Below are positions 7,886 to 55,201 of a stretch of DNA of 64,000 bases, piece after piece. The notes beneath the pieces are model-generated. The model was not told the DNA's origin, searched no databases, and saw only the letters and a program-made list of their open reading frames with translations. Position 1 is the stretch's first letter, and each line of letters begins with the position of its first letter. The translations under genes and the position numbers were made by a program. The stretch is from Neoechinorhynchus agilis (Eukaryota > Animalia > Acanthocephala): NCBI GenBank assembly GCA_051530055.1, contig CM121341.1, positions 12,192,784 to 12,256,783 of the forward strand. The letters run 5' to 3'.

Positions 7886-10800
7886 GATACATTCGCCGCT
7901 TACTCTTTTCGTGTCAATGTTTTCACAACCACAGAGTACTGTGGCGGAGGGTGGCAAACGGCCACCCACAAAGCTTCAATTCTCGTCTTCAAAAGACGAC
8001 ATGTTTGAGATTAGATACTATGATCGTCCTTTCAAAAAAGACAATTACGTATCTAAAATAACTGCTATCCCAATCTCAACCAAAGAGGCCACTTGGGGAC
8101 TTGTCCTAAACCATGGTTAAATACCAAAAAAGATAATATAATAAGAGTTAAATCTACGTCATTTTGGAACGGTACCTCGAAAATAGTCTTTACAAACAAA
8201 ATGGAAAAGGAGGACTGCGAAGCCTTCATAAAAGAACGTTTCGATGATCGGCATTTCAATCTACTATCCTTCAGAAACAAATAAACTTTCATTGCACACA
8301 ACGTCGAGAATTTATCCTCGCCTGAAACGATTAAAGAATTCGAGGAACAATTTCAGCTCAAGTTTAAATTCTTTTTTAAATCCAGGAAGACGGGAAAGAC
8401 GATTCCAGTGGGAGTAGTGGAAACCGACACTGACCATATGGATACTCTATGCTCACGCAAATGGATCTTTCAATGTATGGAGATTAGTTTCTCAAAAAAT
8501 TCCAATACAGATTCTAACCTCGTGTACCCACAATGTAATGTATGCTTAAAGTGGGGGCACTGGAATCAAAGCTGCCCCAATAAAATCCAAAAGTGCTGTT
8601 TCTGTGCCGAGGAACATCATATGTCAACATTCACTAATAAAACGAGTAAGTGTGCCAACTGTGGTGGATCTCACAGGAGCTACTATAAAGGTTGCCCGTG
8701 TTTTAAGGCTTATGTGGATGCCTGGAAGGCGGATATCGAAATGAAAAAAATCAGAGCAGTCAAAAGACAATCCTTTCATCACCGTCCTATCAGACAGGAA
8801 CGATTGCTACTACAAAGGATACAGTTCAACCAACCCAACCCATCTACAATGAAGGGGAGTTATTTCAATGAATCTTCGATAAAGTACTACACGAAGTAAT
8901 ACATAGCATATCGACACTCCTCAACAGCCTTCAGAATCAAATTGCACAGCAAATTCAAAGTATGCTTTCGATCACGATTCCGAAGACCATTATTAACCCG
9001 ACACCGAATAACGGGAACCAAGTACAATCAGGACTGAATAAGAGGCAAAGAATACCCGCCAAAGACAATAAAACAAGCGGCAGAAATTCACGACGCTCGA
9101 ACAATGTATCAAACAATAGACATATCACTAGCGACTCTGACGCTGCGATGGACGTTATAGAATGACAATGAGTGGGTCCTCGCCCGCGCCGCTCAATTTA
9201 CACTGCTTACAATGGAATTCGGGTGGAGCCGCGGCTCTAAACAGGTTAGATATTTTTAACTACGTTACCGAAGATATTATTTGTATACAAGAGGCCAAAA
9301 AGGCAGCAGTAGGTTTTTATGTTTTACCACAAAAGTTTACATTTGAATACGATGTATTCCCAGCATTTCCCTGGAATGCACATTCAAGTGGTCTCTTAAC
9401 AATTTTCAAAAAACACCTTTCAGCCTCGCTTATCCACAATTATATTAGTGAAAATCTATCATATGCTATCTTCAAAATTCACTCTAATGGGAAGGAGTTA
9501 ATGTTAGTTGGAAATGTTTATGTACGTCCGAAGTTCATAAATAAAAAAGATACGAAGGACATTATTAGTGACCTTCTAAGTTTAGGCAATATCGTTTTAT
9601 TTGGCGATTTTAATGACCCGTCAGGAAAATGGACGAAAGCAATAGTCAATAGAGAAAGCACTCATGTGTTTTTAACTCCCACCCAGCCCACATTTCACAG
9701 GGTATCAAGTAATGTTCATTCTTGGTTGGATGGATGCTATGCTCCTTCCAACAGACAGGAAAGCACTACGGTTGTGAAACAGTGTGCTTTATCGGAAGCA
9801 TGCTATCACGATATCATAACCTGGTATTTATCCAACGACAAGTCCCTAACTCGCAGATTCCGATTTTTCGCCAATTAATGTAGCCTTCTTTAACTTCGCC
9901 ATCAAAAGTTCTCTTTTCGTACATCGGAGTTTCTATGACTGGAATTCTTTACTTTTAAATCTTTCAAATAACTGTCTCTCGCCCCAATCATTCATCAAGA
10001 GGAGCAGTTTCCTCTAATTATCTGAGGTACTGCGCCTCTCAAATTAAAATAACCAATATAAACCAGGATGCCCCAATGCAGAGACTGTGGTCAAACAAAT
10101 ATTGGACCTGCAATTACAATCTACATTTGAAGCAGCATCGTAAAGTAATGAGGAATCTATCTTTTTCGATAAAATCCTTTTGGCGCATCCTAGAGAACAC
10201 GACATTTATCAAATGGAAAGACAAAGCGTTGAGGTGGATCAGGTCTGTATCCTATAAGATGGTATTGGATTTTATCACAAGGAAACTCTCTTTTGGAGCA
10301 ACAAATGATTTACCGTCTGATAATTGGTTAAACCTCCCATTACTCAGATCATTGAATGAAGGACATTTACGTGAGGAGGATATTTTAGAAGCCTGGAGTG
10401 GTACGACAACGTTTTCATCGAATAACGTAAGTGCCCCTAGTAAATGTCTAAGGTTTATAGAACCTTCAATTCGTCCTTTAATCGCTTCTTGCATGCTTAA
10501 AGCATCAAAGGAAGATTGGTTGCGTATTAATTTCGCACGAAGAATTTTTCGAAAATTTGGAGCATTAAGAAATTAAAAACACCCATTTTTCGTTTGATAA
10601 AAATCTCAAAAAAAGAAGCAAATATTGGGCCTATGCGGATAATTAATGTTTCTTAATTTTCAATAAAAAAAGGGAAAAGTTTATTAATCTTATTGGAGAT
10701 CTTATTAACTTAGATTGCATTAAAAGAGAGCAAATATCGCTGTAAATAGACAAAAAAAACCTTAATTATCCCCTTAACAAAGACGCCGGGTGTGAGAGCA

Positions 10801-22959: not shown

Positions 22960-25683
22960 TGACATTTGCTGTGCTTTTAAGCTGTTCAATGCGAAAGTGT
23001 AAATTCTCTAATGAAGGGAACCTACAAATCCGGCAACTGTCCTCTTGGTGTATTTACTACCCTGTTTCTATTTATTTACTGAAGATTTTGGTTATATTAC
23101 TAATCGAAGAAGATGAGGAAAACGAGCCACTGGACTCCGCTGATGCTCTACAAAAATATTACAAAAAATTTCGACTAATTTTGATTGTTTCGTTCGCTGA
23201 TTGGATGCAGCTTTTATCTGTTTTCCGTCTCACAGTAGTCCTAAATAATCAAAAAGCCCCTTGCCATTGATGACGACTCCTCAAACGTGCGTATTACTTC
23301 AATTCGAAATTTATTTTAATCAAAGTAACTCACGATAGCTCATTTTTTTCATGGTGCAAATAAAAACTGTAAGTAAATTCAAAATGTAATCCTGTTTGCT
23401 TTGTTCTCCAAGTGAACAAGTCGAGGAAAATGAGCAATAGAGAGAAATCAAATACTATGTATGCCGATGATCTTTCGGTTGTAATTAAGGAGGCAAATTA
23501 TATACGAGCACGAGAGAAAATGTGGTGAGTTACAAATCGATACGGTATTTAAATGTTTAGCGGAGATCGATAACACCATTACTATATATCGCATTTGATA
23601 TAAGTAAGGCATTCGATACCATTGATATTGATTTTGTTGTGAATATTTTAAGATTTTTTATTTTCCTGTTAATCTGATAGCTAGGGTAAATAATACATTA
23701 AAATCTAATCGTTTCTACTTTTCGGATGATCCTTCTAGAACCATATTCTATCAGCAGAAAGAGGTACCACAAGGATCCCCTCTATCGCCCATCTTGTTTT
23801 GCATAGCCACTCAATATATTGTTAAAAACTGCAATGTTTGCAAATCGATTTAGATACGTTAGATTTCAAAAAATGTGTACGCAACAAGCTGTTGCGGTGG
23901 AGGGTGGCGAACGGCCACCCAATGTTTTGAGAATTCCCGTGCCTCCGGACATTCGGAGTCAACTTCTCAGCAATCAAAATAGTAAGCATTTCGTGGACGT
24001 GCTTTCTAAAAGATGTCCCAATACGATAAGAATCGAAGCAAATCCAATACAACCCAGAGAAGAGCTACACAGACGTTATCTGGCTCCGTGGCTCAAATCC
24101 TTTAAGGATGATATCCATCGTATTTCATCTATCAGCTATTTCGGATGAATATTGAAAATCAGGTTTATAGCAACGGATTTTATGAAGGCTTATCTGGCTT
24201 TCATCAAGAAAAACTGCAACTTTGCAGGTGTGACAATTTCGAACACAAGTTATGAATCAACCTTTATCGTTTCTGGGCTCTCTCCAGATATTGATGATGC
24301 AGATAAGATAGCGTTCGAGGAAAAATTCGGAGTCAAATTGCTCTTTTTGCTCAAGTCATCAAGAACGGGGAAGTTTATTCCCAAAGCTATTGTAAAAGCT
24401 GCGGTCGAACGGAGGGACGCACTATGCACTGAGCGATCCTTCTTCCAATCCATGGAGGTTAAATTTACTTCAAACGAGATTTCGCGTTACGACGACTATT
24501 ACTTTCCTCGGTGCAGTGGGTGTCAATGTTGGGGACATTGGGAGCAGAGGTGCCCGTCCAAGGTCACGCGATGCGCTTTTTGTGGCCAAGACCACCACAG
24601 TACCAAATGTGAGAAAAAGAAAAGCCACTGCTCAAACTGCGATCGAGATGGACATTGTGCGTTCTCAAAGAATTGTAAAGCATTTAAGGAATATGTTGTG
24701 TGGGCGAGACTGCTAGTATCCAAGGTAAATAATTCATCCGACACTCGAGTTGCCCAGAATAGTTGGAATACGACAAAGGACAAACCCATAAGAGGATCTG
24801 CAACAACCAATACAACCAAAAAAACATACCCAAGGCAACAACTGGGTACATCCAAAGATGTTAATAATCTACGGACGACTTATGATGACACCTTGGAAAA
24901 GAAGTTTGCTGATTTCTCCGCTAAAATCCTCGACATGGTCGATCTACGAATCACCGCGGCCATTCAGGGTCTTGAGAGGAGACTGCCCAGTTAAACGGTC
25001 TCATCGAAACTCTCTCGACAAAATTCATAGATATTCAGATCGCGACCGGGGTAGCTCCAGCACCCTGCAAACGCAGTCGAGCACTGGTTTCAAGTAGCAA
25101 CGGTGTAGACGATGTGGATATGTACGAGGCCGAGGAGTTCGTGAGCAACATCATAAGCGACTGACGGGGTCCGCGCAGTGGAACGCAGGCGGGCTTCTGG
25201 GTATTCCTGGCCTTTTGTCTGAAGCACAGAGAAGTGATATTACTTTTGTGCAAGAAACTAAGTCGCTGTACTCTCTTAACAACCTCCCGAATGGTTTTAA
25301 TATTTTATCTAGTGAATATTATTTATTTTGCACAAAACCCCTTTTAAACTACTCAAGGTTTATTATCCATTTTTAAAACTTGCCTCCAACCAACCCTGAT
25401 TTCAGTTTACTTCCTCGGATTTGTCTTACGCTTTATTTTCAATACGTTTCTTGGGGAGGAAATTGCTCTTAGGTAATTTCTATATTAAACCTAGGAAAAT
25501 ACACCTCACTCGTAATAAAGATCTTATAAAAATGTTTTAGCATCCGGAATTGACTTTTGCTTCGGAGATTTCAACGACCCTTCTCACAAATGGATAAAGG
25601 CCATTTTACATTCGGATAATACCCGTGACCTTATTGTTTCTGCGGATCACACGCTTACCGACGGCAGGTCTCATTCTTTTCTA
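22960..25683. repeat. Segmental duplication with 35670-38396 (offset 12710); continues 25684-26629 = 39990-40938 after a ~1.6-kb deletion
   Basis: Identical ORFs 22971/35681, 24152/36862, 26035/40341. Confidence 0.93.
23440..23850 (+). mobile_element. Scrambled RT fragments of a family-B-like LINE (also ~36150-36560)
   Basis: MYADDLSVVIKE precedes AFDISKAFD and VPQGSPLSPILF, which is not the canonical motif order. Confidence 0.75.
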
Positions 25684-25918
25684 AGGCGAGACGTGCCGCT
25701 CGTATTGGGCTTAGCGCCAAGATATGCAAAGTAATATGATGCTTTTGGGCTATTTCAGGCCTAGTTTTTTATTCCAGAGGAAGGCCTCCAGAACAAAACC
25801 TAAAATTCCGCTGTGTATTCTTGAAAACCTGTCGAGACTACCCTTTGAGTGGATTTCCTCAGCAGACTGGACCAACAAATCCATGCAGTGGATCGGATTG
25901 TGACCTAAAATAAAAAAA
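23849..25918 (+). mobile_element. LINE family B, internally deleted copy
   Basis: ORF1 ATG 23873 with one in-frame TGA at 24146; knuckles CSGCQCWGHWEQRC, CAFCGQDH, CSNCDRDGHC; APE QWNAGG..QET..GDFND; joins the C-terminal region at 25684; A-rich tail 25907-25918. Confidence 0.85.
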
Positions 25919-25919
25919 C

Positions 25920-26629
25920 GGATACTTAACTATAGAATGTTGCTTTGGTTATTCAGCGACAGCGGTCGATCCATGGTTTGCCTTTGACGAATAATTTTTT
26001 TTAGATACGTTCGTGCAATACTAAAACGCGCTCATTGCTCCGATCAACAGCGATGGATAATGCGTTGTTATCGTTGAGCGCTGCAGCGGAGGGTGGCAAA
26101 CGGCCACCCACTTCTCTGAGAATTCGGGTGTCTCTGGAGGTCCGGAATAGTATTCTAGGGGATATGAAGCTATTTCCCAATGACAATAACTCCATGGATA
26201 AACCCAAACTTCTCGAAATAAAATCAGTTGAAAAACCAACGGATCTTATCTACTTATCCCCTCCATTACAAAAATGGCCACATTCGTCTCGAACCCGATT
26301 CAAAATGTATCTCGTTTCATGGCTTCGTTCTTTCAACGATGATTGCCAGAGAATCATGAAAGTCACATACAAACCATGGAACAGAGAATGCAATTTCCTG
26401 TTCTCAACTCAACGGAATTGTTGGTTGTGTACGCAAGAAGTGATCAGGACAAGCGAAGCAACATCCGAAAAACTCCAACCCGAGTTAATTGAGCCCACCC
26501 TTCCTATTTGGTAGCACCATCGAAATCAATGGCCTTATACGATATCAATTACATCGAATCCAATACAACCGAGAGAGTCTATGCACAAATAATATCTCAC
26601 TCCTTGGGCGAGATTGTTCGAGGATCTAC
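25920..26629 (+). mobile_element. LINE family C, 5' part of ORF1
   Basis: MDNAL..AEGGKRPPTSLRI; truncated at TTGTTCGA where module Y begins. Confidence 0.7.
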
Positions 26630-29257: not shown

Positions 29258-32200
29258 TATATTTGAAGTTTTAAAGGATGTTAATTATATAGATACGCTC
29301 AATTCCGATTGGGTTTTAGTTGAATGTCGAAAATCCACTAGAAAGTAAGTCCGTTAGCAATAAGGCCTCCAATTGTAGAGGAAATTATAGAACTGATTAA
29401 CTCTTCGCTGTTACACTCGCGTATCAATAAGGCAAATTATTTTCGAATAAAAGAAAACAAATTGCTTGCAATCCAATGATTTAAGATTCTGTTCAAGATG
29501 TGAGTTATGCCGGGACGAAGTCAAGTAGAGATATGTGTGGAAATATTACTGAATTCACCAATAATGATAATATGTTCAAGACCAAGAGAGTGCAGATTTT
29601 CTACTTGTGAATCGATCTCCTGTGATGCCATCTGTAGATTGGCTGAGAGAGGACGATAGATACCGATAAATGTAAAATTTCGGCTGCCTGAGCGAAGTTT
29701 GAGAGAGAGCGTTGTGTGGATGTATTCTAAATATGGTGATTGGCAAGGAACTGAGGAGGAGCTCTCCGCAGGGAATGAAAATAGAGACTCCACCTCCTGT
29801 GTCATCGTCTTTGTACGTGTGTAAGGAAGTGTAGCCAAGAATTAAGGAGATGCCGGAATTGGAGGAGTGCAGCCATGTTTCCACAATTAACAAAAAGTCT
29901 GCGTTTGCAAAAGAGGCAAATGGCAAAACAGGATCTAGTTTAGGTAAAATACTTCTTTTGTTAGTGAAACGAACGGAGGAAAATGGTCGCTTGAAGGAAC
30001 TTGAAAGGGGATGCAGTTTGCGAGAGTTGGCTGGTGGAAGAGTTCGATGGATACGTTTCTGAGCGGCTCTTGAGTTCCCGGTAATGTTTGATTCTGCTAA
30101 CGTACGGCAAAGATTTTCGGAGGTATCCAAAAATTTACAGATGAATTCCGAAGGTATTTTTTGGCTGGTCTTAAGTAGATATCAGGAGAGAGAAGATTTG
30201 GCAAAATATTTGCAATAAAAGAAGAAAACCAAATGCTAATAATCGCATGACTTGGTCGCTATGACAACTTTTGATCAATTTAATAAAATCAACCTTAGCT
30301 TTGAAAGTTTGGAAGAAGAAGCGACAAGTATAACTGCCCAAATTAATGCCTTTTCGGCGTGGTCGTCTTGGTTAAAACCGTGACGCGAAATGAGCGATTG
30401 CTGAAAAACATTGCCGAATGTCGCTCCGTCAGAAGTATTCAAATATATTTCAAGTTTTCAACTACACTAATTTAAAGCAGCTAACAATTGACTCCTACAG
30501 GTTTTAGTTCATTAGCGAATAACGAATCAGAGGAGATCGAAATCGTGATTGGAAGTTTTGAGTTTTATTAGGTAAGAAAATGAGCGTTACTACTTCTCAA
30601 ATATCTCTAAATTATATTATTTGCAAAGCAAATACATAACAATTTTAATGCTTTTAGTGCAAACCAAATGTTCGTCGAAGTATTCTCCTAAACATAGGAT
30701 TTCTTGGGATGCCGTAAATGTGGTACACCCCCATTACATCGTTGGGTTATAGAAGGATTTCTCGGGATGCTGTAGTCTTTGTACAACCCAATCCTCAGTT
30801 GAAGGATTCTTTAAAACGAAGGATTTCTTGGGGCTTGAACGGTTAAATCGAACCTCGGATGCTATGCAAGCCTCTATTCAAAATGTCCACGCTAATTCGG
30901 AAAAGGGCGTAGACTCCATCTCGGACGTCACCGCAGGAAAATTTTATTTCTGACTAAAATTAAAAACAATTTCAGGTTTGAAACAATGGAGTCTGATTTT
31001 AACTATTCGGCAGCATAAATCTCCTAACTACTCAAAGAGATCATTGATAACACTAAATTTTCAACGATACAGAATTCCTCGAAAAGAAAATTAGTTGAAA
31101 AACGACGCATCCATTAATTTCCAAAAGAACACTCACGATCGTTGAGGCGCTAATACACTTCCACAATTCTTTGGGACGAATGTAAAAATCAACCACCACC
31201 TCCGTAACCGCTCGATTCATCGGTCACAAAAAAAGAGCGATGCGAAAAACGTAAATGCAGCGATGTAAAGCAAACGACGACTTGGAAGGCAAAAAAACGA
31301 CAGAATTACAACTTTTTTTTGTTAATTTGGCGCGCGTTCAAATTTTTATCGTCATCTTTAATCGAAAAAATAAATTTGTGAAAAGTACTCATGTAATGTG
31401 CTTGGTCAGAGTGTTTTAAAATTAACATCAATTTTATTCTTTTCAAAAGTGTCTGTTATTGTTTAGGTCGCATTTCGAAGAATGAGGGAGATCGTTAAAG
31501 ACGAATGTATTTCGACCGATTGAGTCGGTCATTCTCAATTCAATCTAAAATAACATAGGGATTCGTCACAACACGTACATGTGATTTTTTATTTGGACTT
31601 GGGACCCAGGAGAGCGCGAGCTTGTGATCCAATCGTTCGTTTTATCGTTTACTGCCTTCATATAGAAGCGAATCATTGTTTATTCTTAAATTTAAACTCA
31701 GTGACTGAATATATGAATTTTGTTGGTCTAATAATGCGATTAGAAAAAACCATCATTGAATCTTTTTTAACATCAAAATGTTTGTTAAAGTACAAAACGT
31801 GCAATCACCACCGTCCGCAAAATTGGAGCTTCTCCCCTTCATCGGCTGTCGCTTTCACGCTAACAGCAGTGCCTCGTTGTACTGCGAGCGAGATATTTTG
31901 TCGCAGGAATACACCTGCTCGTGCGTCGCCCGTCGTTTCTCTCAATTTCTTCGAGATATCCTAGAGCAGGGTAAGTGCCGAGCTGCCAAGCGCTCCATAC
32001 GTCTCTACTCCGAAGGGGACAAAATAGTGGGCCTTTGCTAATTCTCTATATTTTCGTACCTTCCTGCCTTCCGCTGCACTGGCTGCACCTCCAGGGATTT
32101 CGAGTTAGTAGGGAATGTTGCTTACTGCGAGGGTGTCCACAAACGTGGCGTCCCAGAGAAAACATTTGCTCACCCGCCACGGAAAGACCGAAATTCCGTC

Positions 32201-34660: not shown

Positions 34661-36558
34661 TACGCCTCTGTGGTTCTAGCTGCTGTTGTGCTTATTTTGT
34701 TAGTTCGCAATTTTCCGAAATTGTAGTTTGTTAACAGAATGTCTCGTGTTGACTACGAGAAATAATGTCAGCCGCATTATTGCTTCTTTGTTTAATGGGC
34801 CTGAATATACTTGTATAGAATTCGTTGCCGCCATCTCTTCGGTATGGCATTGCTTATTTGAGTGTTTGTTTATCGTTGCGCATTTCAATGTTTTCTGAAC
34901 TTTTCGAAATTAATTTATCCCCTGGTCGTAATTTTATTCTACGCGTGAGGAACCCAATTTTTCCTTGAAAAGATTGTCGTTTACGTCGTTTTGAAGCATT
35001 ATAAAGGTGTTCTAGTAAACATGTTTGCTTATTAGTTTTCGAGTTGTTGAGCAAACTTTGAACGCCCGTGTACTATTTTGGTGCTATGTTTACCATTAAT
35101 AGTCTCCGTTTGTGCACCCGTTAAAGTCTACTTGGTTCGAGCGTCACTCCGTTTTCGAACCAAAGAACCATCTTCATCACTCATCCTTGAAACGAAATGT
35201 ACACGGCCTTTGAACTTGCCTGGATCTACAACGATTTCCAATACGAAATCACTTGGTTGACTCAGGTGTATCAGTACCACTATGCGCTCTATGGAGATCG
35301 GTATACCGACTATTTTAAAAAGTACCACTGGGTTCAATACTGGAACCACATAGCTTTGTGGGCCATGAGCAGAGGCATAACCGAGTAGCTGCCTCTGCTA
35401 ATGAAGGTCGGCTAAAATCGCAAACTGACCCCTATGTCATAGTCATTGCGATATTTTCAATAAAGTGTTATCTTTATTGCTTGATCGAATTCTTGTGTTA
35501 CGCAAACTATAGAATCCAGGACATTCGCTTTTCACTAATTTTAATATAATCTTTTTAGCGCAAGTTTTTTTGTGATTCTTATATCTAACTTTTTGTTCGA
35601 TGAGCGTTCTCATCTATACCAATCGATGTGTCCATTTTGTACATTTGCACACCAAATTACGTTCGTCGCAGACATTTGCTGTGCTTTTAAGCTGTTCAAT
35701 GCGAAAGTGTAAATTCTCTAATGAAGGGAACCTACAAATCCGGCAACTGTCCTCTTGGTGTATTTACTACCCTGTTTCTATTTATTTACTGAAGATTTTG
35801 GTTATATTACTAATCGAAGAAGATGAGGAAAACGAGCCACTGGACTCCGCTGATGCTCTACAAAAATATTACAAAAAATTTCGACTAATTTTGATTGTTT
35901 CGTTCGCTGATTGGATGCAGCTTTTATCTGTTTTCCGTCTCACAGTAGTCCTAAATAATCAAAAAGCCCCTTGCCATTGATGACGACTCCTCAAACGTGC
36001 GTATTACTTCAATTCGAAATTTATTTTAATCAAAGTAACTCACGATAGCTCATTTTTTTCATGGTGCAAATAAAAACTGTAAGTAAATTCAAAATGTAAT
36101 CCTGTTTGCTTTGTTCTCCAAGTGAACAAGTCGAGGAAAATGAGCAATAGAGAGAAATCAAATACTATGTATGCCGATGATCTTTCGGTTGTAATTAAGG
36201 AGGCAAATTATATACGAGCACGAGAGAAAATGTGGTGAGTTACAAATCGATACGGTATTTAAATGTTTAGCGGAGATCGATAACACCATTACTATATATC
36301 GCATTTGATATAAGTAAGGCATTCGATACCATTGATATTGATTTTGTTGTGAATATTTTAAGATTTTTTATTTTCCTGTTAATCTGATAGCTAGGGTAAA
36401 TAATACATTAAAATCTAATCGTTTCTACTTTTCGGATGATCCTTCTAGAACCATATTCTATCAGCAGAAAGAGGTACCACAAGGATCCCCTCTATCGCCC
36501 ATCTTGTTTTGCATAGCCACTCAATATATTGTTAAAAACTGCAATGTTTGCAAATCGA

Positions 36559-39500
36559 TTTAGATACGTTAGATTTCAAAAAATGTGTACGCAACAAGCT
36601 GTTGCGGTGGAGGGTGGCGAACGGCCACCCAATGTTTTGAGAATTCCCGTGCCTCCGGACATTCGGAGTCAACTTCTCAGCAATCAAAATAGTAAGCATT
36701 TCGTGGACGTGCTTTCTAAAAGATGTCCCAATACGATAAGAATCGAAGCAAATCCAATACAACCCAGAGAAGAGCTACACAGACGTTATCTGGCTCCGTG
36801 GCTCAAATCCTTTAAGGATGATATCCATCGTATTTCATCTATCAGCTATTTCGGATGAATATTGAAAATCAGGTTTATAGCAACGGATTTTATGAAGGCT
36901 TATCTGGCTTTCATCAAGAAAAACTGCAACTTTGCAGGTGTGACAATTTCGAACACAAGTTATGAATCAACCTTTATCGTTTCTGGGCTCTCTCCAGATA
37001 TTGATGATGCAGATAAGATAGCGTTCGAGGAAAAATTCGGAGTCAAATTGCTCTTTTTGCTCAAGTCATCAAGAACGGGGAAGTTTATTCCCAAAGCTAT
37101 TGTAAAAGCTGCGGTCGAACGGAGGGACGCACTATGCACTGAGCGATCCTTCTTCCAATCCATGGAGGTTAAATTTACTTCAAACGAGATTTCGCGTTAC
37201 GACGACTATTACTTTCCTCGGTGCAGTGGGTGTCAATGTTGGGGACATTGGGAGCAGAGGTGCCCGTCCAAGGTCACGCGATGCGCTTTTTGTGGCCAAG
37301 ACCACCACAGTACCAAATGTGAGAAAAAGAAAAGCCACTGCTCAAACTGCGATCGAGATGGACATTGTGCGTTCTCAAAGAATTGTAAAGCATTTAAGGA
37401 ATATGTTGTGTGGGCGAGACTGCTAGTATCCAAGGTAAATAATTCATCCGACACTCGAGTTGCCCAGAATAGTTGGAATACGACAAAGGACAAACCCATA
37501 AGAGGATCTGCAACAACCAATACAACCAAAAAAACATACCCAAGGCAACAACTGGGTACATCCAAAGATGTTAATAATCTACGGACGACTTATGATGACA
37601 CCTTGGAAAAGAAGTTTGCTGATTTCTCCGCTAAAATCCTCGACATGGTCGATCTACGAATCACCGCGGCCATTCAGGGTCTTGAGAGGAGACTGCCCAG
37701 TTAAACGGTCTCATCGAAACTCTCTCGACAAAATTCATAGATATTCAGATCGCGACCGGGGTAGCTCCAGCACCCTGCAAACGCAGTCGAGCACTGGTTT
37801 CAAGTAGCAACGGTGTAGACGATGTGGATATGTACGAGGCCGAGGAGTTCGTGAGCAACATCATAAGCGACTGACGGGGTCCGCGCAGTGGAACGCAGGT
37901 GGGCTTTTGGGTATTCATGGCCTTTTGTCTGAAGCACAGAGAAGTGATATTACTTTTATCCAAGAAACTAAGTCGCTGTACTCTCTTAACAACCTCCCGA
38001 ATAGTTTTAATATTTTATCTAGTGAATATTCTTTATTTTGTACAAAACCCTTTTTAAACTACTCTCCAGGCTTATTATCCATTTTTAAAACTTGCCTCCA
38101 ACCAACCCTAATTTCCGAGTTTACTTCCCCAGATTTGTCTTACGCTTTATTTTCAATACGTTTCTTGGGAAGGAAATTGCTCTTAGGTAATTTCTATATT
38201 AAACCTAGAAAAATACACCTCACTCATAATAAAGATTTTATAAAAAATGTTTTAGCATCCGGAATTGACTTTTGCTTCGGAGATTTCAACGACCCTTCTT
38301 ACAAACGGATAAAGGCCATTTTACGTTCGGATGATACCCATGACCTTATTGTCCCTGCGGATCCTACGTTTACCGACGGCTGGTCTCATTCTTTTCTAGA
38401 CTTGTGTCTTGCTCGAAGTAACTCATTTGTTAAACCCAAACTGGTTCTCAATCATCAATTTTCCGTATTGCTGGACACGATATCTTAGTGTGGGAATTGG
38501 GACGGAATATTCTTTTGTGCCGTAAATTTAAGTTTAGTGCACTTAACATCAACATCTTTAACGCTGCCATAAATTTGGCTTTCACTTTTGGCGCTTTTGA
38601 TCAGTTAAAGGACTTAAATGAATTTGTGGTTACAGCTAGTGACTCGATTTTGACAACGGTCACGAGAAGTATCGGGTCGAAAATGCAGAAACCAAAAGTA
38701 CTCTCCCTGTATGGCAGACAACTTTTTATGGCTAAGGCAATCGATGATCGGGGGTCGGCGACAGTAAGCGAATTAGCTTTTTATGCCTTATTCCTCTCCT
38801 TGGTGGCATGTCGTTGCACCAAAAAGATTTTGTCCCTGGAAAAGGGCCGCATCGAGTTGGAATAAAACCTCGGGGTGGGGCAATGTTATTAGCGCTCTTT
38901 GCATTGAACATTGCAATGGAGCAAGTAATGTCCCGGTCTTCAATAATTTTATTCAAATTAAGCCTCGTCGTTTTGATTTACGCCGGAATGATTTTATCAT
39001 TTGGCGGGGTTCAAGAAATCTTACATCCAACAATGGTTCTTCCCCCTGTTTCAAAGCCACCAACGTTCTCAATCAATCAAATATCACTTCCTTCGCTGAG
39101 CACATGTTGGCAGCGTCCCCTGATGAATGGTCTCAGATAAACATAGCGAAGAGAATATTTCTCTGTAAAAAAAGGTAGGGCTGTTTCTTCACCTAGTGAT
39201 GTGAGACCTATCTCCATTCAGAATTCGTTTGTTTCCATATACGAGCGACTTCTGGCCAAAATTATAATGGATTTTTCTTTTAAACGTCACCTTATTGATG
39301 AACGCTGTCATGGTTTCCTCCCAGGGAAATCTGTTCATACTGCAATTGCTAAAATAATAGATAACCTTTTTAGTCACCCCAAGTCAACAAACATTCTTAT
39401 CTCGTTCGACATATCTAAAGCTTTTGATAATATTGGCATTGCTTTTATGGTGAATATTTTGAGATTTTTTGTTTTCCTTTTAAAATAATTGCTAGAGTGA

Positions 39501-40224
39501 ACAACATCCTGAAATGTAAACGATTTTTCTTTGCAGATGATCCATCAAGGTCTATATTCTATCAATTCAAGGGGTTCCTCAAGGCTCACCTTTATCACCC
39601 ATACTTTTTTTGCTTGGCAACTCAATTTTTGATTAAAAATTGCACGATTTTGTAGTAGCGTCACTATGCACGCCGATGACCTTACCGTAGTTATCAAAGA
39701 GTTAAATTATTTGAGAGCACGTGCGAAACTGGCTGCCGTGCTGAACTTTTTAAAATCCCACCTACCTCAAATGGGTCTCTCTTTGAATGAAAAGAAGACG
39801 AAATTTTTAATCAAATCTAAATCTTGAGTGGGTAAGAAGAACATCCGGGATTATATCAAGGATTTTTTGGGTTAGATTTCAACCCTGCTTATAAGAAGCT
39901 TGATATTTTAGGTTATACTTTCACTAATAACCTCTCGCCCGCCTCCGATATACACAAGATGAAAAAACTTTTAAAGACAGCCAGAGTTAAGGCGAGACGT
40001 GCCGCTCGTATTGGGCTTAGCGCCAAGATATGCAAAGTAATATGATGCTTTTGGGCTATTTCAGGCCTAGTTTTTTATTCCAGAGGAAGGCCTCCAGAAC
40101 AAAACCTAAAATTCCGCTGTGTATTCTTGAAAACCTGTCGAGACTACCCTTTGAGTGGATTTCCTCAGCAGACTGGACCAACAAATCCATGCAGTGGATC
40201 GGATTGTGACCTCAAATAAAAAAA
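36559..40224 (+). mobile_element. LINE family B, longest copy (ORF1, APE, RT; frameshifted)
   Basis: ORF1 36583-37704; APE QWNAGG, FIQET, GNFY, GDFND, FLD; RT RPISIQN, HGFLPGKS, SFDISKAFD, PQGSPLSP, MHADD, LGYTF; A-rich end 40214-40224. Confidence 0.9.
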
Positions 40225-41925
40225 CGGATACTTAACTATAGAATGTTGCTTTGGTTATTCAGCGACAGCGGTCGATCCATGGTTTGCCTTTGACGAATAA
40301 ATTTTTTTAGATACGTTCGTGCAATACTAAAACGCGCTCATTGCTCCGATCAACAGCGATGGATAATGCGTTGTTATCGTTGAGCGCTGCAGCGGAGGGT
40401 GGCAAACGGCCACCCACTTCTCTGAGAATTCGGGTGTCTCTGGAGGTCCGGAATAGTATTCTAGGAGATATGAAGCTATTTCTCAATGACAAAAACTCCA
40501 TGGATAAACCCAAACTTCTCGAAATAAAATCAGTTGAAAAACCAACGGATCCTATCTACTTATCCCCTCCATTACAAAAATGGCCACATTCCATCTCGAT
40601 TGTCTCGAACCCGATTCAAAATGTATCTCGTTTCATGGCTTCGTTCTTTCAACGATGATTGCCAGAGAATCATGAAAGTCACATACAAACCATGGAACAG
40701 AGAATGCAATTTCCTGTTCTCAACTCAACGGAATTGTTGGTTGTGTACGCAAGAAGTGATCAGGACAAGCGAAGCAACATCCGAAAAACTCCAACCCGAG
40801 TTAATTGAGCCCACCCTTCCTATTTGGTAGCACCATCGAAAACAATGGCCTTATACGATATCAATTACATCGAATCCAATACAACCGAGAGAGTCTATGC
40901 ACAAAGAATATCTCACTCCTTGGGCGAGATTGTTCGACGACAACGTTGAACGGATTTCCAGAGTATCGTACTACGGTGGCAGTCTAAAAGTTTATCTTTT
41001 GACCGATACATTTCGTAAAAGCTATGAAAAATTCCTGGAAAAATGCGATCAATCGAAAGTTAAAATTCACTCGACATCTTACGACACTACGTTTGTTGAC
41101 TGTGAATTATCCCCAGACATCGATAATGAAGACAAAATAGCCTTTGAAGAGAAATTCCATGTCAAAATTTTGTTTTTCCAAAAAACCCGGAAGGACCGGC
41201 AAGCCCATTCCGAGGGCAATCGTGGAAGCAGATATCGGAACCAGGAATCACTTGACGGAACGGAAAAGCTATTTTCAATCTATGGAGATGATCCGACCAA
41301 GATGCGCCATGGGCACAACAATGCCCAAGTAAAAGGATTATTTGCGCCTACTGCGCCGAGGAGCATGGGAGTGGTCAATGCGAGCGCCGAACCAAGAAAT
41401 GCGCAAATTGTGGACAAGTAGGCCACTGCGCCTTCGCAAAATCGTGCACCAGTTTAAAAGCCTACATGTTCTGGGCTAGCGATGTGGACAATCAGAAGAG
41501 GTTAATTAATACTGAATGGTATGGGAGGAAATCGGTTAAGAATGTGATAGAGAACAACCCAGATATTACCGAAGTGTGCAATCCTAACAATTCATCAATG
41601 GAAGAACCTCCATTACGCAAACTATGAAGAATATGGAGGCATTATCAAGGACGCAGGAGTTTCAATATCCCAACAAGAGAGGGAGAACAGAACATGACAG
41701 TTGCCAATTAGATAAGGGCGCATACGACGATCCTATCGAGGGCAATGCGGCCTATTTACAACAAATAATAAACGAACAACAAGCGTTCTGCGATGGCTGT
41801 TTTGCTGATATCGTCAAAAAAGGAAAAAGAAGATGACCAGCGTAAGGTTGGTGCAGTGGAATTCCTGAGGTAAGTTCGGGTTACCTAGATTATGTGGCGA
41901 AGCGCTGAAGAGTGATATTATACTG
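40225..41925 (+). mobile_element. LINE family C, ORF1 and start of APE
   Basis: AEGGKRPP start; CPSKRIICAYCAEEH..CANCGQVGHC knuckles; MTSVRLVQWNS APE start at ~41832, then truncated by module Y. Confidence 0.8.
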
Positions 41926-44230: not shown

Positions 44231-47168
44231 GATAATTGCGCAGAGACACAAAGGTGTGCGCAATTACGACTAAATCTCAAGCGATTGTAGAAAAGGATTG
44301 TAATGGAGGTTCTTAAACAATGAATGATTGTAACCAGTATGAGTTAATATCTTCCCTTCCACCTTTACCTCCACAATCCTTCAGTGGTGGCCAATCTGAC
44401 TCAGTATCTCCAATCGTCTCCCTGATCGGCACCTTACCACAAAACATATTAAAAAGGATCCCAAAAGGCGCGAGATACCAATGTGCGAGGTTCTATTCGA
44501 CACTGCTCTCGAAGTGCGTCTCTGAGCCGATCGAAGCTAACTACTTGCGGGTATTCGCCTTTCCTCGAATAATCTTGAACACAAACCGCGACTCGGACAG
44601 TAATCTCACCTGTACGATCAAAAAGCGACTCACGGATTATGACAATTTATTTGGGATAAGCTTGAGTAGATCTATGGAGTCGCCTTCAATCGAAGCTAAA
44701 CGCCCAAAATGCTCAGGCCAACGTTCTCTCCTTGCCAAGAGAGTCTCTGCAAAACTGGCTGACTTCGATGTACGAGGTGCAGTTCAGTTGCTAAGTTCGA
44801 CGGACTCATTTGCTAGAAGTGATCAGTGCACACTTGATGCACTTAGAGGTAAACACCCCGTCGGCAATCCCCCTTCCTTACCTGATGTCCCTACTGAGGC
44901 CAGTTTCCAATGCGATATCTCAGAGTTAAGAAAAGCAATCGCCTCCTTCCCGAACGGCTCTGGACATGGTCCCGATGGTCTTCGCCCTCAACATTTGAAA
45001 GACATGCTCAGTTTAGGAGCAGCAGCTGCTGGATCAACTCTTGAAGCATCCCTAAGGGATTTCACGGAACAAATCATCAACGGTATCCCACCTCCCGAGG
45101 CGACAAGCTTCCTCTTCTCAGCCACACTATGCGCCTTATCCAAAACGAATGGTGACATTCGTCCGATTGCTGTGGGATGTACAATACGACGTTTGGCTGC
45201 TAAATTATTGTGCAAAAGATTTTACGATGACGTTGGACGTCAACTCCGTCCCTTTCAACTAGGGTGCTGCACTCCATGTGGAGCTGAATCGATCGTCCAT
45301 GCGACAAGATCTTTCACAGACAATCGAGCACATTGAACGCAGTGCTTAAGGTGGATTTCAGCAACGCCTTTAATTCAGTCGATCGCTCAGCCCTACTGAA
45401 AACAGTAGCTGTTAGCCTTCCTGGAGCATATCGTTATTTTCAGATCGCATATGGCACCAAGACCCCTCTATTCTTCGACCACCACACCATTTGGTCAGAA
45501 ACCGGTGTACAACAGGGATATCATCTGGGTCCGATTGGGTTTGCTTTGATAACGAACGATATCATCCGAATGCTTAACTCAAAACTAAACGTGTGGTATC
45601 TAGACGATGCGACAATTGGTGGAGATCCGGCAGTGGTCCTAGATGATTTGAAGAGGCTGATCATCGCCACATCGAAAATCGTATTAACTGTGAACTCGTC
45701 GAAATGTGAGCTAATGCTAATCAATGCAAACCAATCGGATAGAGATGCAATTTACAGCTCCTTTCTTGATATCGCTCCGGGAATACGACTCATTGAACCG
45801 GATCGTTTCTCTCTTCTTGGTAGCTGTGTCCTTAGTTCGAACGTTGAGAGGGAAATCGATGAAGTATTGCCTGATTTGGAACGTTTGTGCAGTCGAACGT
45901 GTGAGCTTGGCTCTCATGAAGCCCTATTCCTTTTGAGGAATTGTTTATGCATGCCAAAAATGCTGTATAAGTTAAGAGCGGCTCCATACTTCGAGCACTC
46001 ACATAAGCTTCGACAGATTGATTTAATGCTGAGGAGACAACTACAACGCATCACGAACTCCCAGCTTTCAAATGAGGCATGGCAACAAGCAATACTGCCT
46101 ATAGAATACGGTGGATTGGGCCTTCGGAGCGTAGTCGAATTAGCACTTCCAGCTTTCCTCGCATCGGTCACCAAAACAAAAAATATAACCAATGTTATAT
46201 CGCAGCAGACCGATATGTCGGCGGATGATGTCGAACGTCGTGGAGTTTCCTCGTGGCTCATCAAGACCGATCTAGATCAAGTTCCAAAAAATGGCCACGA
46301 ACAGCCTGTTTGGGATAAACCCCTCGTAGAGAGAGCCTATAATAAATTGAAAGGGCATCTCGATTCGGTGTCTCAAACACGGCTAGTGGCGAGCTCTTCT
46401 AAGGAGTCTGGCGCTTGGTTAAATGCGCTGCCAATCAGACCTTTAGGCACACACCTTGACGACGAGTCGGTGAGGGTGGCTATCGGGTTGAGGCTTGGCA
46501 TACCTCTATGCATACCCCACAAATGTCGATGTGGTTCAGCAGTTGACGAGTCAGGTAGACATGGCCTTCTTTGTAAACGATCTGGTGGTCGATTGGCGAG
46601 ACACGAGAAGTTAAACAACATTATTAGCAGGACGCTCCACTCATTAAATGTCCCGACTCTATTAGAGCCGAACCACCTGTGTCGCTCAGATGGCAAACGT
46701 CCCGATGGGATGACCATATTCCCGTGGAAAGAGGGAAAATGCCTTATCTGGGACGCCACATGCGTCGATTCGTTAGCACCCTCCAACCGAAGTGATGCAA
46801 TATCAGGACCGGGAGGAGCTGCGACGGCGGCCGAGAGGAGGAAGACAGCGAAATACGCTGAGCTGGAAAAGACACCTATTTCTTCCTTTCGGTGTGGAGA
46901 CAAATGGGGCGTTTGGAGTTTCGGCAAACAAATTTTGCGCGGAGATAGGCCGACTACTCATAAAAGCCAGCGGAGATCACAGAATAAGGAACTACCTCAT
47001 CCAACGCTTGAGTGTGGCTATTCAACGGGGCAACACGGCAAGCGTGATAACAACGGCCCAATGGGTGGCGCGTAATGAGGGATATAATGAAAACAAAAAG
47101 ATTGAATTATAAATTTGTTAGAGCTGCTTAATAGTTCTTTTCGTAGACAAAAATAAATAAATAAATAA
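44231..47168 (+). mobile_element. CRE-like family 3, near-intact ORF with two frameshifts
   Basis: 44320-47112: KRIPKGAR, SGHGPDGLRPQHL, IRPIAVG, LKVDFSNAFNS, GVQQGYHLGP, WYLDD, GGLGLR, CRCG..RHGLLC, KRPDG, DATCVDS, K..KY; frameshifts at ~45333 and ~46876; (AAAT)n at both ends. Confidence 0.92.
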
Positions 47169-49300: not shown

Positions 49301-49460
49301 TGATTGGAACATACTTTTATATCCTATTATTTTATCACTCAAAAGCTAGCCTCTTAAGCCACTAACCCTTAGGGTTTCATTTTTTGTTTTAAAAAGAACA
49401 CTTCACCGGAATATCGTAAAGATTTTGTTTTTCCATTTCGCCAAAGTGTCTAATTTTTAC

Positions 49461-55023: not shown

Positions 55024-55201
55024 TTGTGCTTTTTGAAAATCGAGCGCCGAAATACGTCCAAAATTAAGATATGACCACGATTTCGTGCCATTCCGAGTCG
55101 ATACGCGACGTTGGCCTCGCGCCGAATTCGCGATAGAAAATTGAAAAACGAAAAGGTGACAACAAATAAAATATATTTTATTGCTATATTTCGCGAGGTG
55201 C

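Follow-up and report, generated by a model that had tools for sequence, protein, structure and literature searches.

Within a 64,000-nucleotide stretch of the Neoechinorhynchus agilis genome (Acanthocephala), here called the window, LINE families of very different sequence carry the same short block of nucleotides just downstream of the ORF1 start codon. The question raised by this locus is what keeps such a block identical, and whether it is read as protein, as DNA or as RNA. LINEs must bring their own expression signals to each new site, and to our knowledge these signals are hardly known beyond L1, a few insect elements and the trypanosomatid L1Tc. All data presented are from one genome, that of N. 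agilis.

Occurrence of the 23-Nucleotide Block

A preliminary description of this DNA had listed five motif sites with one variable loop base, and an exact pattern scan recovered all of them. The pattern GGAGGGTGGC[A/G]AACGGCCACCCA is present at five places in the window, in three independent families (A, B and C), and exact matches to GGAGGGTGGCRAACGGCCACCCA (n = 5) start at 7946, 23899, 26088, 36609 and 40394, on the + strand only; the chance expectation was zero matches across 100 dinucleotide shuffles. When the five sites were aligned with MAFFT over 500 nt, the 23-nt block was the sole long invariant run. Since the pair of B sites and the pair of C sites stem from one segmental duplication (22961–25683 equals 35671–38398 at 98.8% for the B part, and 25682–26621 equals 39988–40937 at 98.1% for the C part), the window holds three independent instances and not five.

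The family A element has its ORF1 AUG at 7917–7919, with the element 5′ end about 2 nt upstream (CA directly before ATG) and the translation MFSQPQSTVAEGGKRPP; its 23-mer lies at 7946–7968. The gag-like ORF1 with CCHC zinc knuckles (7917–8899) is frameshifted, and APE and RT pieces of ORF2 are found downstream of it, to about 10576. In family B, copy 1 spans 23873–23921, with the AUG at 23873 and the 23-mer at 23899–23921, and opens an ORF1 (23873–24994) with three CCHC knuckles and one in-frame stop. Copy 2, its segmental duplicate, spans 36583–36631 (AUG at 36583, 23-mer at 36609–36631), and the duplicated ORF1 (36583–37704) is followed by ORF2 at 37886–40206. Family C is present at 26053–26110 (AUG at 26053, 23-mer at 26088–26110) and, as a duplicate, at 40359–40416 (AUG at 40359, 23-mer at 40394–40416); the N-terminal 87 residues of this second copy match the beginning of the N. 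agilis gene model P0004 exactly. All these features lie on the + strand.

The same 23-nt block was found in three more families (D, E and G) at other chromosomal loci of the N. agilis genome, and it was decayed in dead or truncated copies elsewhere in it. Variation among near-intact families is limited to loop positions 11–13 (AAA, GAA or ATT), with the stem, the linker and the last two loop bases identical in at least six families. As far as folding predictions go, a hairpin-forming block is common to at least six otherwise very different LINE families of this species. ORF1p identity between these families is only 20–50%, its three CCHC knuckles being the best-conserved part, and a search with the ORF2 protein gave a closest match of 32% identity over 25% of the query. 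Exact 23-mer scans of metagenome and genome contigs returned chance matches in high-GC bacterial genes (L002–L005) and no relatives.

Constraint beyond the Encoded Protein

Codon usage was compared at the 26 ORF1 positions where families B, D, E, H and C′ all have the same residue. The codon was identical at 5/5 motif codons and at 0/21 elsewhere (Fisher = 1/65780), and conservation of the protein alone is thereby excluded. Between families, columns with the same amino acid share the codon in a fraction of 0.18–0.50, with synonymous sites otherwise saturated, so that a recent shared origin does not explain the block. Directly 3′ of it, the codons for Leu, Ile and Pro vary. Stem-breaking third positions, which the preliminary description had named as the case that would speak against a nucleic-acid signal, were absent from near-intact families and appeared only in truncated or decayed copies; synonymous changes of this kind are CGG to CGT in H and CCC to CCA in G′. 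Since such changes do occur in truncated or otherwise dead copies, the block is not simply a mutational cold spot.

It could be argued that there is no nucleic-acid function, and that the block reflects codon bias on top of protein constraint on EGG(K/E)RPP, or else a recent exchange between families by recombination or gene conversion. The Gly-Gly...Pro-Pro codons automatically supply 4/7 of the pairs, and chimeric 5′ ends (family K in L015; P0021) indicate that 5′ modules move between lineages. However, two or more codons are used in all 21 other columns with an invariant amino acid, the palindrome is also completed by third positions, and the flanks differ directly on both sides, so that an exchange would require tracts of exactly 23 nt in each of six lineages. 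An origin of this kind is extremely improbable. On the codon evidence, the 23-mer is a control signal that is read as nucleic acid rather than as protein, and the proposal of a cis-acting element in a divergent LINE clade is borne out by the codon test, the saturated synonymous sites, the occurrence in families D, E and G and the second hairpin ahead of the block. The block was also considered as the target of a site-specific insertion, which was rejected since protein-level homology continues across both sides.

Location at the Element 5′ End

Comparison of independent copies of families A, D, G and C showed that similarity ends 0–4 nt before the ORF1 AUG. The sequence shared with a second family A copy (L014) starts at CAATG, and that shared with a C-like copy (L007) starts about 4 nt before the family C AUG. 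Judging by these boundaries, the elements start 0–4 nt before the ORF1 AUG, which is a new finding and would place the hairpin module at the 5′ terminus of the LINE RNA.

The upstream motif given in the preliminary description is present, as TTTAGATACGTT at 23849 and 26000 and as GATACATT at 7886, but it lies outside the elements, since similarity ends 0–4 nt before the AUG. GATAC(G/A)TT as a part of the element was rejected also because it opens a LINE 3′ UTR directly after an ORF2 stop codon. The elements are often arranged head-to-tail, directly behind the 3′ end of another LINE. No clear target-site duplications were found around family G in L009.

Predicted RNA Structures

The 23-mer folds into a hairpin, HP2, with a 7-bp GC stem (GGGTGGC/GCCACCC), as previously noted, and a 5-nt loop. 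Its calculated energy is −14.8 to −15.8 kcal/mol and its pair probability is about 1.0 within a 150 nt context. In family A, the stem is at 7949–7955/7961–7967 with loop AAACG (−14.8 kcal/mol), and in copy 1 of family B the loop is GAACG. The earlier stem distances were confirmed: counted from the A of the AUG, the stem begins at 32 nt in A, 29 nt in B and 38 nt in C. Across families it starts 24–39 nt after this base, mostly at 30, and the distance from AUG to block is 21–36 nt (27 nt in four families).

A second hairpin, HP1, is family-specific. It starts about 8–13 nt after the AUG and ends 4–5 nt upstream of HP2, the linker being (G)CGGA, or GUGGA in B. HP1 is the MFE structure in A, B, D, G, J and K, and the combined Fisher p is about 4e-5 with one sequence per hairpin type, the individual empirical p values being obtained against same-length windows from LINE coding sequence. 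The upstream stems described earlier for A (CCACAG-AGTA-CTGTGG, 7929–7944, p = 0.021) and B (CGCAACA-AGC-TGTTGCG, 23880–23896 in copy 1, p = 0.007, and 36590–36606 in copy 2) are both MFE structures, whereas the palindrome described for C is weak (p = 0.18). HP1 is weak in E and L too.

Signs of compensatory change are few. When HP1 of G is set against that of J/E, all cells (100%) are paired, and the differences comprise a single compensatory pair (U-A to C-G) and a single G.U change. Pair counting on G/J/E/G′ rests on this one compensatory pair in a tiny sample, with a shuffle control that was not significant (94/500). Among the families compared, HP2 showed no informative covariation, the stem being either invariant or broken. 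Family L has lost both TGGC/GCCA half-sites. Its four central pairs are retained by a single double change, T-A to C-G, but three further pairs are broken in that copy, and chance could account for the change. HP2 is missing from the sister F-group, where the AUG is instead sequestered within a strong hairpin (−12 kcal/mol; p about 0.006 each). Between the three F copies this hairpin carries three distinct G.U-preserving changes, and it is about 3–7 kcal/mol weaker on the opposite strand, which points to the + strand RNA.

Known RNA classes were searched as well. Rfam covariance models, including HDV, CPEB3 and drz, gave no match at gathering score in the window and none at E ≤ 10 when the 5′ regions of D and A were searched, and ARAGORN found no tRNA, tmRNA or tRNA-like gene. 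Base-pair probabilities assign no consistent partner to the first 7–8 nt in any of A, B, C, D, E and G, so that an HDV-like P1 cannot form, and the two local hairpins (6–7 bp) fill the space where P2/P3 would lie. An HDV-like fold, threaded by eye on these probabilities, was rejected for want of a consistent P1. A hammerhead fold was rejected because a CUGANGA-like string is present in only two families, and a tRNA-like or three-way-junction closing helix because the 7-bp pairing of nt 2–8 with GAAAAUA is found only in family D.

Proposed Role of the 5′ Module

The explanation that we favor, with a probability of roughly 0.4, is that of a 5′-terminal RNA module that is read sequence-specifically by a factor common to all families and acts on the expression of an almost leaderless ORF1. 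The 23-mer would be the invariant half (HP2) of a two-hairpin module within the first ~50 nt of the LINE RNA, in a set of divergent APE-type LINEs of N. agilis with a CCHC-knuckle ORF1. Since bases are fixed including unpaired ones, and the letters are identical in competing families of one host, HP2 is probably a recognition site and not merely a stable stem; the recogniser would be a single trans-acting factor shared by the families, either the ribosome or a protein of the host. Most likely, the module would govern ORF1 expression from a nearly leaderless mRNA. A cap-proximal AUG is normally skipped, and a stable hairpin ~30 nt downstream, held by the factor or by the 40S subunit, may fix the initiation complex on it. 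The module may also switch the RNA between translation and RNP assembly, and the same DNA may also serve within an internal promoter. In scanning-dependent systems, a hairpin as close to the AUG as HP1, which starts only 4–9 nt behind it, inhibits initiation (PMC4872096; PMC3177215), which makes a simple “enhancer” role doubtful for a module with HP1 at that place.

Alternative Explanations

The 23-mer might instead act as DNA, as the downstream element of an internal RNA polymerase II promoter, namely a palindromic host-factor site with initiation ~30–40 bp upstream at the element's first base. In LINEs without a 5′ UTR, the promoter must overlap ORF1 codons, and synonymous sites would be frozen for that reason. 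With element 5′ ends 0–4 nt before the AUG, any internal promoter lies in this coding stretch, where the 23-mer is the only block conserved at the nucleotide level; it is found within ~50 bp of the first base in otherwise unalignable LINE families of the host, and its identity across competing families suits a host factor. All HP2 pairs are Watson–Crick, which makes a perfect DNA palindrome. As an observation in its own right, which counts against the RNA reading, such a palindrome would suit a dimeric DNA-binding protein equally well. The TGGC-N5-GCCA core of the canonical block has what we take to be the arrangement of nuclear factor I half-sites, and each arm contains what is presumably a CACCC box; both matches were noticed post hoc, which weighs against them. 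The Drosophila jockey, I, F and Doc elements, with an Inr plus downstream elements in common, offer a precedent. Further precedents are Pr77 and TISU (PMC5814959; PMC3177215). On the other hand, the distance from the element 5′ end to the block ranges from ~27 to 42 nt, unlike that of strict-spacing core elements, the F-group is entirely without the block, and family L lost both half-sites yet kept the four central pairs. A DNA site also leaves unexplained why HP1 and the F-group hairpin are kept as + strand structures with G.U pairs. A promoter element of this kind is a serious rival, though somewhat less probable than the RNA module.

If the module is RNA, it could be bound by the element's own proteins (CCHC-knuckle ORF1p or ORF2p), either to mark the RNA for packaging or cis preference or to stop ORF1 initiation, as a translational operator, when enough protein has been made. 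Like the operators of phage coat proteins, the module overlaps the region of initiation; its conserved single-stranded G-rich linker with a hairpin resembles zinc-knuckle protein targets, and three CCHC knuckles are the best-conserved part of ORF1p across families. R2 provides a precedent in a 5′ protein-binding RNA structure that overlaps the ORF start (PMC5814959). However, a self-recognition signal would be expected to diverge, and here 23 identical bases are set against 20–50% identity in ORF1p; moreover, the F-group has homologous knuckles and lacks HP2, and binding by the element's own proteins is doubtful. A 5′ processing signal, that is, a new self-cleaving RNA or a host-nuclease substrate that frees the LINE RNA from read-through transcripts at the AUG, would resemble the HDV-like ribozymes that cut R2, RTE and L1Tc RNA from such transcripts. 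It would account for 5′ ends that are precise and common to the families and for an invariant GC helix with invariant unpaired bases, and the head-to-tail placement after another LINE's 3′ end makes co-transcription likely. Against this, there is no Rfam match, no consistent P1 partner and a CUGANGA-like string in only two families, and processing is very unlikely. Finally, RNA and DNA functions could coincide in a dual-use 5′ terminus new to metazoan retrotransposons, in which an RNA device (first-codon translation of an essentially leaderless Pol II transcript, or 5′ end definition by a new processing or self-cleaving activity) would be combined with internal promoter DNA read by one host factor needed by all the competing LINE families of the worm. 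Such a combination is unlikely, slightly more so than the binding of the element's own proteins.

Implications

One codon-embedded 23-nt signal is common to at least six deeply diverged families, on an RNA that appears to start at its own start codon. It presents a clean and testable case of overlapping protein and nucleic-acid constraint, in which several competing transposons may depend on one host factor. If the RNA reading is true, it is relevant to the ability of eukaryotic ribosomes to start at a cap-proximal AUG; should the DNA reading be true, a promoter element has been identified in a phylum without promoter biology. For practical use, the motif precisely marks the full-length members of this LINE clade in genomes of acanthocephalans.

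Comparison with Known Systems

One close comparison is Pr77 of trypanosomatid LINEs and SINEs, which functions both as RNA and as DNA, in the latter form as an internal promoter for Pol II whose DPE lies at +25 to +28 (PMC5814959). Pr77 (in L1Tc, NARTc, ingi and SIDER) and the 23-mer are alike in being short, located at the element 5′ end, conserved at the nucleotide level across the LINE/SINE families of one host group, and in travelling with the element. Their sequences are unrelated, and Pr77 folds as an HDV-like ribozyme with P1 from +1, whereas here there is no such fold and no Rfam ribozyme match, and the block lies inside ORF1 codons with only 23 nt fixed.

HP2 had been likened in the preliminary description to the alphavirus DLP, a type of element for which eIF2-independent initiation is one criterion. 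The active window of the DLP is 25–40 nt, hairpins 13–16 nt after the AUG inhibit, and its function needs scanning along the leader, its sequences not being conserved (PMC4872096). The analogy stands for position and stability, as in the Kozak downstream-hairpin effect, with a stable GC-based hairpin ~24–39 nt after the AUG. It fails in that the DLP is conserved as a structure with a scanned leader, whereas here the leader is only 0–4 nt, the sequence is invariant without stem covariation, and an extra hairpin, HP1, is present at +8, an inhibitory position in DLP-type systems.

The human L1 YY1 site and the Drosophila LINE internal promoters are short motifs that bind the host transcription machinery. 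Like the 23-mer, they occur within the first ~50 bp and are common to otherwise unalignable LINE families. They differ in being located in 5′ UTRs, without hairpins and with strict spacing from +1, whereas the 23-mer has a spacing with a spread of ~15 nt and is accompanied by a variable RNA hairpin that is likewise kept.

TISU, a 12-nt motif (SAASATGGCGGC) around the AUG of mRNAs whose leaders are very short, acts in transcription and translation; it draws on nucleotides 3′ of the AUG and is inhibited by downstream hairpins (PMC3177215). Very short leaders are common to TISU mRNAs and the LINE module, and the LINE AUG contexts do not match SAASATGGCGGC.

The 5′ RNA structure of R2 is bound by the element's own protein. 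This protein-binding structure is located at the 5′ end and overlaps the ORF start (PMC5814959), and a structured 5′ RNA with this overlap is what R2 and the LINE module have in common. R2 is an RLE-type, site-specific element with a single ORF and a pseudoknot, whereas the LINEs described here are APE-type, with two ORFs and two simple hairpins.

The Block and the LINE Clade Carrying It

Five exact plus-strand matches to GGAGGGTGGCRAACGGCCACCCA were found in the window (7946, 23899, 26088, 36609 and 40394; chance expectation none), at the sites where a conserved hairpin had been described. This 23-mer, the block, is the sole long invariant run when the five sites are aligned over 500 nt. Self-comparison of the window showed 98.8% identity between 22961-25683 and 35671-38398, and 98.1% between 25682-26621 and 39988-40937, so the two sites of family B and the two of family C trace to one segmental duplication, leaving three independent instances. 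In families A, B and C (3/3), the block lies in frame shortly 3' of the ATG, the N-termini being MFSQPQSTVAEGGKRPP, MCTQQAVAVEGGERPP and MDNALLSLSAAAEGGKRPP, respectively.

Downstream follow ORF1, gag-like and bearing CCHC knuckles, and ORF2, which has Exo_endo_phos endonuclease and RVT_1 domains; the carriers are APE-type LINEs. A search with the B ORF1 and then with a profile of several ORF1s matched, among 5.8 billion proteins, only Neoechinorhynchus agilis hypothetical proteins, and in one of them (P0004) the N-terminal 87 residues are identical to ORF1 of the second C copy. When 1.84 billion cluster representatives were scanned in full with HMMER, only 61 matches came back; ten were looked up, every named one belonging to N. 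agilis (Acanthocephala), and two distant matches lack the motif. The ORF2 search found no relative above 32% identity over a quarter of the length. The clade is thus very divergent, and it is visible here in one genome only. The sample comprises about a dozen copies from that genome, with some six to eight truly independent lineages. None of the examined copies is fully intact, each having at least one stop or frameshift; their low decay suggests an active status.

A different LINE occupies 44320-47075 (+), with ORFs of 338 and 580 aa and RVT_1; by eye, a Cys/His motif at the C-terminus precedes a restriction-like endonuclease signature, RPDG...D. It is repeated in the window, a 184-aa antisense ORF recurring at 1997-2551, 29576-30130 and 46373-46927 (-). 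In addition, a tandem satellite spans 49458-55026 (unit about 259 bp, about 21 copies, 60-100% identity).

Occurrence in Further Families

The genomic loci of the matched ORF1 proteins were retrieved. The block is unchanged in three more families, D and E (locus L001) and G (L009), the loop of G being ATTCG vs. AAACG. Single changes occur in C' (L007/L008, loop CGG>TGG), G' (L010, CCC>CCA) and the 5'-truncated H (L012, CGG>CGT). J (L013) carries G5>A and G16>A, A' and L (both L014) two and eight changes, and D' (L011) a block disrupted through an internal deletion, while two decayed modules stand in tandem in the chimera K (L015). The block is confined to ORF1 starts throughout 324 kb from N. 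agilis. Exact chance matches to the 23-mer also lie within high-GC bacterial genes (L002-L005: a Pseudomonas MAG and three metagenome contigs that are nearly identical), the peptide encoded there being EEGGKRPPS.

In dead copies, the block has decayed mostly through plus-strand G>A changes (L013 3027; L014 4077 and 10548; L015 10030 and 10111), and both G5 and G16 are altered in the unrelated families J and L. At the K 5' end (L015 10001-10135), a D/B-like module (AUG, upstream hairpin, decayed block and third hairpin) is joined ahead of an A-like element, which begins at its own block. Because the K-related proteins P0030 and P0041 carry these altered peptides too, the chimera may have been amplified; P0021 (MCTQQPS+MFSQPVV...) resembles a further 5' fusion. 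A gene model at the edge of L010 (21521-21944) matches Pfam RdRP_4, a viral RNA-dependent RNA polymerase, and may be an endogenous viral element.

Constraint on Nucleotides

To compare codon usage, the B, D, E, H and C' ORF1s were aligned by codon under the guidance of their protein sequences, and M and W columns were excluded. All five share an amino acid in 26 columns; its codon is identical as well in five of these, all within the motif (GAG, GGT, GGC, CCA and CCC), and in 0/21 elsewhere (Fisher probability 1/65780). Between families, identical amino acids share codons in a fraction of 0.18-0.50, the close pairs C/C' and D/G' excepted, which indicates saturation of synonymous sites. Several codons are used for the conserved Leu, Ile and Pro directly 3' of the block. 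Since the GAG third base is fixed though unpaired, and the Ala codon preceding the block is GCG in 5/6 families and also unpaired, the constraint acts on nucleotides and reaches past the stem. These results bear out the proposed synonymous-site conservation and, with it, the proposed cis-acting RNA/DNA element: the block is a cis element constrained at the nucleotide level at the 5' terminus, alongside maintained RNA hairpins.

Element 5' End

Copies D (L001) and D' (L011) are identical from the ATG on and unrelated upstream. Similarity begins at ACATG between G and G', at CAATG between A and A', and about 4 nt before the ATG between C and C'. These limits place the probable start of the LINE RNA 0-4 nt before the ORF1 AUG, and two hairpins would fill its first ~50 nt. 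The shared upstream motif of the preliminary description, 24-53 nt before the AUG, falls outside the element; GATACGTT also opens the family G 3' UTR, directly 3' of the ORF2 stop.

LINE 3' ends read ...GCGAATAAATT(T)n. In the window and in L001, L006, L011 and L012, an ORF1 start follows the ORF2 end and short 3' UTR of another LINE, and this head-to-tail order explains the 3' UTR sequence upstream of B and C. The junctions lie at 25680-26053 and 39863-40359 of the window, L001 13300-13724, L006 9560-10001, L011 9090-9510 and L012 9250-9700, and the next ORF1 AUG comes at once or after a short spacer, at times slightly 5'-truncated. This arrangement suggests that the hairpin-clade LINEs inserted in the A/T-rich 3' tails of earlier copies. 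In family I (L011 9510-9541), (ATG)4 replaces the 5' half of the block directly after the GCGAATAAATTGT end of the upstream LINE; the junction resembles a 5'-truncated insertion with a microsatellite-like joint.

Hairpins at the Start Codon

The block hairpin, HP2, is GGGUGGC-NNNCG-GCCACCC (-14.8 to -15.8 kcal/mol), with pair probabilities of about 1.0 in all families when folded in 150 nt of native sequence; loop positions 11-13 are the only ones to differ between near-intact families. A 4-5 nt linker, (G)CGGA or, in B, GUGGA, separates it from the family-specific HP1: CCACAG/CUGUGG in A, CGCAAC(A)/(U)GUUGCG in B, D and K, CUAACG/CGUUAG in G, CCAAUG/CGUUGG in J and CCAA/UUGG in E, with weak pairing only in C and L. 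When the minimum free energy from AUG to block was compared with all equal-length LINE coding windows, p was 0.007-0.05 in A, B, D, G, J and K and 0.12-0.18 in E, C and L; with one sequence per hairpin type and the F-group (sister families lacking HP2) included, Fisher's method gave a combined p of 4e-5. The preceding second stem proposed for A, B and C therefore holds for A and B and is weak in C. A third hairpin was seen 3' of HP2 in several families (window 23930-23955; L001 13785-13805 and 10080-10100). In B and E it is CUCCGG/UCGGAG, the nucleotides being almost the same in both; in D and G it is AGAGAGC/GCUCUCU.

The suggested covariation was sought in G, G', J and E. All HP1 cells (100%) are paired; one change is compensatory (U-A to C-G) and another replaces C-G by U.G. 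The shuffle control (94/500) was not significant with these four sequences. HP2 showed no covariation in this alignment, which does not separate a hairpin from a DNA palindrome.

In family F (L006) and its L016 and L017 relatives, the N-terminus is longer by about 35 codons, the peptides at the position homologous to the block are degenerate (e.g., SKKPISLKI), and HP2 is absent. At their AUG lies a hairpin of -11.6 to -12.4 kcal/mol (p = 0.005-0.009), whose 3' arm (ACGAAGA, ACGGAAA or AUGAAAA) carries three different changes, pairing being kept each time via G.U; the reverse complement reaches only -5.7 to -8.2 kcal/mol. The clade as a whole thus appears to have a plus-strand RNA hairpin at the start codon, to which one branch has added HP2, and the evidence for RNA structure comes mainly from HP1 and the F-group.

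Possible Function

Competing families that share a host are identical at 23/23 bases, so the block is probably recognised by one common factor and not by the fast-diverging protein of each family. The reading we favour, with a probability of about 0.4, is an RNA-level role, in which the module would act on how ORF1 is expressed from an mRNA with almost no leader. The part of PMC3177215 citing Kozak 1991 puts the leader needed for faithful AUG recognition at roughly 20 nt. In alphaviruses, the downstream loop (DLP) acts from a window of 25-40 nt, making the 40S subunit stall at the AUG (PMC4872096). The position of HP2 within that window agrees with the DLP-like enhancer put forward earlier; DLP function, however, requires scanning, DLP sequences vary freely, and hairpins as AUG-proximal as HP1 inhibit initiation in such systems, so a switch or repressor is no less plausible than an enhancer.

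An internal promoter element acting as DNA, the main rival, is possible and somewhat less likely than the RNA-level role. The palindrome contains TGGC-N5-GCCA, a candidate nuclear factor I site, and two CACCC boxes, and with no 5' UTR any promoter must share its sequence with codons; trypanosomatid LINEs provide a precedent in their Pr77 hallmark, a conserved 5' block serving as promoter and in RNA (PMC5814959). Variable spacing speaks against a purely DNA reading, as do the F-group and the hairpins with G.U pairs. That ORF1p or ORF2p binds the block is unlikely given its cross-family identity, and a processing signal or ribozyme is quite improbable, neither Rfam nor pairing of the 5' nucleotides lending support. 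That protein constraint or recombination alone fixed the block is hardly credible with 5/5 motif codons fixed vs. 0/21, saturated synonymous sites and varying codons 3' of it.

Comparison with Known Systems

No description of this module was found in the literature searched. The Pr77 hallmark is the closest concept to the two-hairpin arrangement, the DLP the closest positional analogue, and the shared Inr/downstream elements of insect LINEs the closest family-level precedent; where membership was testable, the module departs from each in at least one defining feature. As read from sequence, it would be a LINE 5' cis-regulatory module, placed here within codons at a leaderless start.
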